Below, in pieces: positions 27,800-28,299 of a stretch of 64,000 nt of DNA. Position 1 is the stretch's first letter, and every line of letters starts with the position of its first letter. Source of the stretch: Orbicella franksi (taxonomy: Eukaryota); NCBI GenBank assembly GCA_964199315.1, contig OZ116708.1:13330001-13394000 (forward strand), given 5' to 3'. Both the position numbers and the translations under genes were made by a program. The notes beneath the pieces were generated by a model. That model worked only from the letters and a program-made list of their open reading frames with translations, made no database searches and was not told where the DNA came from.

Positions 27800-27988
27800 T
27801 CTTGATGTTGACAGTCGTGGCCACGAACATTTCACAAGTATTTGACAATTGTTTGCTTTTTTATAAATTTAACTCGTGAACGTACGGTTGGGAATCCTTC
27901 TGCGATAGAGGGCCAGACTGTCAACATCAAGAATTTGCGAACGGGACTTTGGGCGTGATGCTCAACGAGTTTGCCTTTGAATTCTAAA

Positions 27989-28034
27989 GGTCTCTGAAGA
28001 GTCTCTTGGCCGAGACGAAACGCCGCGTCAGACT
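27989..28034 (+). ncRNA. Type I hammerhead ribozyme, copy 1 (predicted cleavage after C28029)
   Basis: Stem I GGTCT/AGACT, core CTGAAGA, stem II GTCTC-TTGGCC-GAGAC, GAAA, minimal stem III ACG-CCG-CGT, GTC cleavage triplet. Confidence 0.85.
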
Positions 28035-28204
28035 AGCCACGAACATTTCACAAGTATTTGACAATTGTTTGCTTTTGTATAAATTTAACTCGTGAACGTA
28101 CGGTTGGGAATCCTTCTGCGATAGAGGGCCAAACTGTCAACATCAAGAATTCGCGAACGGGACTTTGGGCGTGATGCTCGACGAGTTTGCCTTTGAATTC
28201 TAAA

Positions 28205-28250
28205 GGTCTCTGAAGAGTCTCTTGGCCGAGACGAAACGCCGCGTCAGACT
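28205..28250 (+). ncRNA. Type I hammerhead ribozyme, copy 2 (predicted cleavage after C28245)
   Basis: Identical to copy 1, 216 nt downstream. Confidence 0.85.
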
Positions 28251-28299
28251 AACCACGAACATTTCACAAGTATTTGACAATTGTTTGCTTTTGTATAAG

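Follow-up and report, generated by a model that had tools for sequence, protein, structure and literature searches.

The window (the whole 64,000-nucleotide stretch of the Orbicella franksi genome analysed here, on contig C11) contains a short tandem array in which each full unit carries an intact hammerhead ribozyme motif, raising the question of what such an array is and how it came to be there. The initial annotation had proposed a Penelope-associated, retrozyme-like array mobilised in trans, a proposal supported by the dispersed insertions, target duplications, 5' truncation, inverted arms and one-sided tail of ~27 nt described below. It is highly probable, in our view, that the window array is one insertion of a young, dispersed, non-coding coral retroelement family that is functionally an animal non-LTR retrozyme and depends on a PLE. 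The 216-bp family itself is new, and it belongs to a kind that has been described before; cleavage of its RNA, formation of circles and mobilisation by an enzyme of a Penelope-like element (PLE) are inferred.

Tandem Repeats Finder reports 2.2 head-to-tail copies of a 216-bp unit at 27820-28304 (period 216, 97% matches, score 928), in agreement with the initial annotation, and the two full units have identical ribozyme segments and differ at five other positions, also as had been read. The unit is 45.8% GC and non-coding, with stops in all six frames; ARAGORN finds no tRNA-like part in its 216 nt, and it contains one type I hammerhead and no LTR, PBS or PPT. With position 1 of the unit taken as the first nucleotide after the predicted cleavage site, the parts of the array are as follows.

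27798-27816, minus strand: inverted fragment of 19 nt (~18-19), matching unit positions 103-121 in reverse complement and 100% complementary to 27916-27934
27820-28304, plus strand: arm of 2.2 units (Tandem Repeats Finder and sequence reading)
28030-28245, plus strand: predicted 216-nt monomer from cleavage at both ribozymes (sequence; 246-nt RNA-library contigs span the unit junction)
28246-28275, plus strand: AC-rich segment, unit positions 1-30, from the cleavage site to the proximal (short) 3' end (14 insertion ends at 26-32)
28276-28304, plus strand: tail, unit positions 31-59, the 27-29-nt extension at the 3' end of the window array (18 insertion ends at 51-61)

The plus-strand arm thus listed runs from unit position 7-8, shortly downstream of a hammerhead cleavage site, to unit position 59 (28304), which is the long, tail-bearing 3' end. 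The 19-nt inverted fragment adjoins the 5' end of the array and may be either a vestigial inverted arm or a template-switch product. Comparison of the flanks reveals no recognisable target duplication for the window copy, whose inverted piece is only 19 nt long. Within the unit, GGTTGGGAATCC at 28102-28113 (unit positions 73-84) is similar to a Pol III B box (GGTTCGANNCC), apart from an additional base, and is a possible internal promoter, purely as a lead.

Directly to the left of the array, at 27660-27800, palindromes of the TTCCGGAA type are clustered (inverted repeats I1, I8 and I9). Contigs from RNA libraries show deep coverage of 27736-27800 and run on into differing sequence after 27800; the 27660-27800 stretch therefore belongs to a different repeat family that is itself expressed, and the element landed within it or next to it. 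An AT-rich stretch occupies 28298-28822 at the 3' end of the array and includes 11-bp and 33-bp tandem repeats (28683-28813). Further away, a palindrome of ~160 nt resembling a perfect hairpin (48345-48505) gives a weak match to a plant miRNA model on both strands and is probably a MITE or fold-back element. The larger features of the surroundings are the following.

21249-23279: choline-transporter-like exon with a plasma-membrane choline transporter domain (E 1.8e-78)
25656-26846: ORF with an LDL-receptor class A (LDLa) domain
30883-34949: BEL/Pao LTR retrotransposon with aspartyl protease, Peptidase_A17 and an integrase zinc-binding domain

Each full unit contains the three stems and catalytic core of a type I hammerhead, as the initial annotation had stated. 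The cuts it predicted after 28029 and 28245, and the resulting monomer, have the correct coordinates, the motif repeating 216 nt later. The two ribozymes, and the parts of the first as read from the sequence, are these.

27989-28034, plus strand: hammerhead 1, type I, minimal style, predicted cut C28029/A28030 (27.7 bits, full-length model match to RF00163)
28205-28250, plus strand: hammerhead 2, identical to hammerhead 1, predicted cut C28245/A28246
27989-27993, plus strand: GGTCT, helix I 5' strand
27994-28000, plus strand: CTGAAGA, core
28001-28005, plus strand: GTCTC, helix II 5' strand
28006-28011, plus strand: TTGGCC, loop 2
28012-28016, plus strand: GAGAC, helix II 3' strand
28017-28028, plus strand: GAAA, CGCCGCG and T
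28029, plus strand: C17 (28245 in the second copy)
28030-28034, plus strand: AGACT, helix I 3' strand

The conserved core is complete in both units (CUGAAGA, GAA, A15.1-U16.1 and C17), with correct order and spacing. The initial annotation had called CUGAAGA a variant core, which it is not, because position 7 of CUGANGA is free and permits A. Helix I (5 bp) is open, giving type I topology, helix II also has 5 bp, and helix III, which is ACGCCGCGU between GAA and C17 in each unit, is a 9-nt near-palindrome forming 3 bp intramolecularly and 8 bp as a dimer. Across 24 distinct ribozyme copies, 95.8% of stem cells are paired. A search with Rfam Hammerhead_1 (RF00163), which the initial annotation had proposed as a check, matches the full model on the plus strand at 27990-28033 and 28206-28249, and the 27.7 bits correspond to E = 1.5e-4 in a 701-nt search and 0.014 over the whole window; the match thus stands by E-value, but at the gathering score of 34 bits there is none, mainly because helix I is short and loop 2 is long.

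The manner of folding predicted for these ribozymes is that of a pair. Helix I has 5 bp and no internal loop, the canonical loop 1-loop 2 contacts are absent, and for the isolated motif the MFE structure is not the hammerhead, the hammerhead fold being no better than in shuffled sequences. A double-hammerhead fold reaches -28.4 kcal/mol versus -15.4 kcal/mol for two monomer folds (2 x -7.7), and this energy and the near-palindromic helix III favour the dimeric folding suggested earlier. Metazoan type I hammerheads and those of PLEs have been described with this dimer-type architecture (PMC4209133). Loop 2 (UUGGCC, 28006-28011) has a 4-nt complementarity, UGGC/GCCA, with 28036-28039 just 3' of helix I, and likewise in unit 2; this pairing is used in the linear MFE structure and could be a pseudoknot-type tertiary contact, although it is weak and ~8% expected by chance.

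We searched the 497-Mb coral assembly for other members. A BLAST search with the unit, which the initial annotation had proposed as a check of copy number, returns at least 160 matches at 92-100% identity, located on contig C1 and contigs C3-C15. A 33-nt ribozyme pattern with at most one mismatch occurs 146 times, 73 per strand, on contigs C1-C15, and its reversed control does not occur; the hammerhead motif is therefore not due to chance. Family copies form short arrays at ~60 or more loci with differing flanks, and shared flanks are seen for one locus pair only (L002 and L013).

Dissection of 25 independent insertions reveals a stereotyped anatomy. The insertions are 5'-truncated and range from 1.3 to 5.0 units; in 19 of the 25 there are two inverted arms placed head to head, with a variable 5' truncation as their inner junction, and in the remaining six there is one arm. 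The outer 3' ends form two groups, one at unit positions 26-32 (n=14) and the other at 51-61 (n=18). All nine two-arm insertions in which both ends can be classified combine a short and a long arm, with no short plus short and no long plus long, although independent ends would give the mixed combination in ~0.49 of insertions (p ~0.002), such that the 27-29-nt tail is present on one arm only of classifiable two-arm insertions. Many insertions have AT-rich direct target-site duplications of roughly 8-13 bp (for example L006, L008, L009, L010, L026 and L043), and at L010 and L014 the insertion sites are AT-rich (ATT/AAT) microsatellites. The AT-rich and microsatellite settings agree with the reported preference of PLEs for inserting into microsatellites. 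Published PLE insertions are partial tandems truncated at the 5' end, next to which lies a truncated copy in inverted orientation, and only one of their ends bears a 30-40-bp tail (PMC8557442); this pattern has been explained by two adjacent internal RT start sites and by a purified PLE protein that extends both target strands (PMC11167929). The scars of the 216-bp family show the published PLE signature.

Two copies have longer interruptions. At L045:3509-3821 (C7, ~16014508-16014820), a SINE-like sequence of ~308 bp that starts with an A-run is inserted in a family copy directly after AGACU, 5 nt past the cleavage site, and is flanked by duplicated AGACT; this copy, with its non-family downstream sequence, was considered as another context for the ribozyme and rejected, the SINE-like insertion simply interrupting it. 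At L043:1167-1965 (C8, ~19664114-19664912), the two inverted arms of one insertion are separated by ~800 bp of foreign DNA that includes 60-bp tandem repeats, and the junction has a 29-nt inverted ribozyme fragment; the foreign segment may derive from template switching during insertion.

A plausible course of events is as follows. Arrays would be transcribed as multimers, the sequence being present in RNA libraries, and neighbouring hammerheads would pair via their near-palindromic helix III to form a double hammerhead that cuts after GUC, as sequence, energetics and literature suggest. Ligation may then turn the released 216-nt monomers into circles. The presumed enzyme, a PLE reverse transcriptase/GIY-YIG endonuclease supplied in trans, would cut an AT-rich target, and cDNA would be primed on both DNA strands from two internal starts, ~28 nt and ~56 nt downstream of the cleavage site, with an uncleaved multimeric or circular RNA as the probable template. 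The footprints of such a mechanism are seen in the bimodal 3' ends, the one-sided 27-nt tail, the inverted 5'-truncated arms, the arms longer than one unit and the ~8-13-bp duplications.

The alternative that survives best concerns the ribozyme itself. A PLE could mobilise an uncleaved linear multimeric transcript, in which case the hammerhead would be a passenger relic and there would be neither self-cleavage nor a circle. Mutations in the ribozyme of the anole PLE have no effect on insertion in vitro, and for this element no RNA-seq reads end at the cleavage site (PMC11167929); the in vitro activity of minimal PLE hammerheads is also poor (PMC4209133). The 216-nt RNA is, moreover, not specially structured (circular MFE -47.1 kcal/mol, z +0.7 relative to shuffles), and a stable viroid-like fold is unsupported by these values. 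Against a passenger role, more arms than expected begin no further than 10 nt downstream of the predicted GUC^A cleavage site (8 of 45, with 2.1 expected; binomial p = 0.001), and tiny arms of 20-43 nt at L012, L019 and L027 span only the region from the cleavage site to the RT start. A search for the tail lacking AGAC upstream gives 12 matches genome-wide, most of which are arms starting at positions 2-10, and ~5 of the 12 are at loci outside the 25 analysed insertions. The simplest reading of these ends is that some templates were RNAs with a hammerhead-made 5' end.

The RNA libraries also bear on this alternative. Assembled contigs place the unit in four RNA libraries from four studies, the public runs being labelled coral metagenome or coral organisms. 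Contigs of 246 nt in libraries X3 and X5 (depth 219 and 20) span the cleavage site/unit junction, have differing start points, and are isolated, with no flank branches; 246 is 216 + 30 (k-1), the length that an assembler with k=31 gives for a closed 216-nt cycle. The contigs, which have neither ends nor strand, fit a circular or long multimeric RNA, although a tandem DNA contaminant would look alike. Variant sequences at the loose ends of the RNA contigs are absent from this genome and probably come from related corals in the metatranscriptomes. With the isolated contigs and the clustering of arm 5' ends opposing it, we regard the passenger scenario as unlikely.

Less well placed is the possibility that there is no separate family, and that the arrays are truncated remnants (tandem pseudo-LTRs) of an ordinary autonomous PLE that owns the hammerhead. 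PLE insertions show heavy 5' truncation and occur as partial tandems with the hammerhead in the repeated part (PMC8557442, PMC4209133), and this genome has many PLEs: 1018 candidate GIY-YIG/PLE loci, with 149 scored matches at E <= 0.001. Nonetheless, the unit closes on itself (216 to 1) in every array, up to 4.8 units, with no coding sequence, and none of the matches is an ORF-bearing copy with this ribozyme. No same-strand ribozyme pairs 2-6 kb apart, as in pseudo-LTR spacing, occur among the 100 matches listed, and a pattern search of the assembly yields no other hammerhead with the same helix II and core and a different helix I. The longer interruptions at L043 and L045 are secondary events. 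The remnant explanation thus seems quite improbable.

The partner element that the initial annotation had expected to share the unit, a Penelope RT element, was not found by the pattern searches of the assembly or in the two PLE sets inspected: no autonomous PLE with this ribozyme or tail was detected there, nor any PLE whose pseudo-LTR or 3' end resembles the unit, the pattern for a tail lacking the hammerhead returned only family members or 5'-truncated arms, and no PLE-type reverse transcriptase lies beside the window array. GIY-YIG loci L031-L042 were considered as partners and rejected, having no hammerhead and no similarity to the unit. The PLE remnant L044 was also rejected, as it carries a different hammerhead. 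In this remnant (L044:2179 and 3350; C11, ~23307178-23308349), two facing minimal hammerheads flank a 354-aa ORF; they have CUGAAGA, a 5-bp helix II with a bulge, and an ACAUGU palindrome, and belong to a different family.

Sequence variation among the copies indicates how recently the family spread. Copies diverge from the majority letter at only 1-2% of positions (~98-99% identical), and the family is therefore very young. Variability is 0.0175 in the ribozyme and 0.0134 in the rest of the unit, such that the ribozyme is no better conserved; the copies decay neutrally, with no detectable purifying selection on the ribozyme. The covariation score among 56 ribozyme copies, which are ~99% identical in this young family, is 0.076 compared with 0.063 in shuffles (23 of 500 as high), which is not significant and, at this age of the family, says little for or against the stems; the few double changes are at the two CpG-type pairs of helix III. 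That the family is ordinary satellite or segmentally duplicated DNA with an inactive or fortuitous hammerhead-like motif, as the tandem repetition, the lack of detectable selection and the Rfam score below gathering might suggest, is extremely improbable given dispersal over C1-C15 with differing flanks (common to the one pair L002 and L013 only), target duplications, defined 3' ends, and core nucleotides and three helices intact in 146 copies and none in the control.

A more ambitious version of the retrozyme reading would have the minimal hammerhead active in vivo, given the accumulation of arm 5' ends at its cleavage site; strand priming be asymmetric and use two starts; and the RNA be recognised in trans without the partner's hammerhead sequence, because no PLE found in the assembly shares it. 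The asymmetric priming, with one proximal and one distal RT start, suggests a concerted event involving two RNAs or a dimeric RNP. The element would then be a natural minimal PLE template whose scars record the mechanism. We put this forward tentatively, as somewhat less likely to hold in full than to fail.

Coral hammerhead repeats and their Penelope link are already published, and the existence of a 216-bp element is therefore unsurprising. Its value is as a clean example: a very young, small family with ~60 or more datable insertions, whose ends map two RT starts (+28 and +56), a strict asymmetry of one tail per insertion, and an indirect footprint of cleavage by the ribozyme. Biochemical work on PLEs has to date addressed these features in vitro for a single vertebrate element, with which no cleavage-site ends were seen. 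A 216-nt template would offer a convenient substrate for studying PLE reverse transcription and the debated role of minimal hammerheads.

Among known systems, newt satellite 2 and Schistosoma Sm-alpha are repeats with dimer-type type I hammerheads. Close parallels are the minimal dimer-type hammerheads in PLE pseudo-LTRs, which occur en masse in cnidarian genomes (PMC4209133); like these, the 216-bp family has a 5-bp helix I, no recognisable loop 1-loop 2 contacts, a helix III whose short palindrome points to action as a dimer, and near-identical copies that number in the hundreds per genome. Unlike PLE pseudo-LTRs, it has no RT/GIY-YIG ORF between copies. Helix II has 5 bp and no 5' bulged base, whereas trematode (Schistosoma) families have 7-8 bp (PMC4209133), and helix III is a near-palindrome of 9 nt that has C at its centre, whereas in PLE pseudo-LTR hammerheads it is absent or 1-2 bp. 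The 2020 study assigned the minimal hammerhead families of its coral to autonomous PLEs or Terminons (PMC7229834); here a minimal-style hammerhead is seen in a 216-bp non-autonomous tandem element.

As insertions, the arrays resemble PLEs (Craig et al. 2021, PMC8557442; Frangieh et al. 2024, PMC11167929) in their truncation, partial tandems, inverted copy, extension of ~30 bp at one end, two adjacent RT starts downstream of the hammerhead, and AT-rich or microsatellite targets. They depart from PLEs in having a 216-nt non-coding template instead of a 3-4-kb element, a tail of 27-29 nt, and starts ~28 and ~56 nt past the cleavage site. Chlamys MRC1-type elements (PMC8557442), like the newt and Schistosoma repeats, are likewise short and non-coding, insert as several copies arranged head to tail, and rely on a PLE or another RT. 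The Chlamys elements are described as having no canonical hammerheads, and the hosts and sequences of all these repeats differ from those of the 216-bp family.

The described coral retrozyme, Amil224 (units of 225 and 245 bp; PMC7229834), is unrelated in sequence to the 216-bp unit. Amil224 has a canonical CUGAUGA hammerhead with loop-loop contacts and fast monomer cleavage, whereas the 216-bp family is minimal and dimer-type; Amil224 arrays reach 62 units, compared with 1.3-5 units here; and the Acropora Amil224 RNA is highly self-paired, whereas the 216-nt RNA is not unusually structured. Four sites in this genome match the Amil224-type ribozyme at two mismatches, and the canonical coral retrozyme is therefore also present here, at low copy number under a strict pattern. 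At C3:15127220-15127494, two Amil224-type hammerheads lie 241 bp apart and are two loop positions off the Acropora millepora ribozyme.

The animal class to which both would belong was described in 2014, 2020 and 2026, with corals included (PMC4209133, PMC7229834, 10.64898/2026.07.22.740005). Coral retrozymes are expressed as circRNAs (Cervera & de la Pena 2020, PMC7229834), and retrozymes have been presented as PLE derivatives (Li et al. 2026, bioRxiv 10.64898/2026.07.22.740005). Like other animal non-LTR retrozymes, the 216-bp family consists of short (150-450 bp) non-coding tandem repeats with <50% GC and one type I hammerhead each, is dispersed with target duplications, is represented in RNA libraries, occurs in stony corals, and is proposed to be PLE-dependent.
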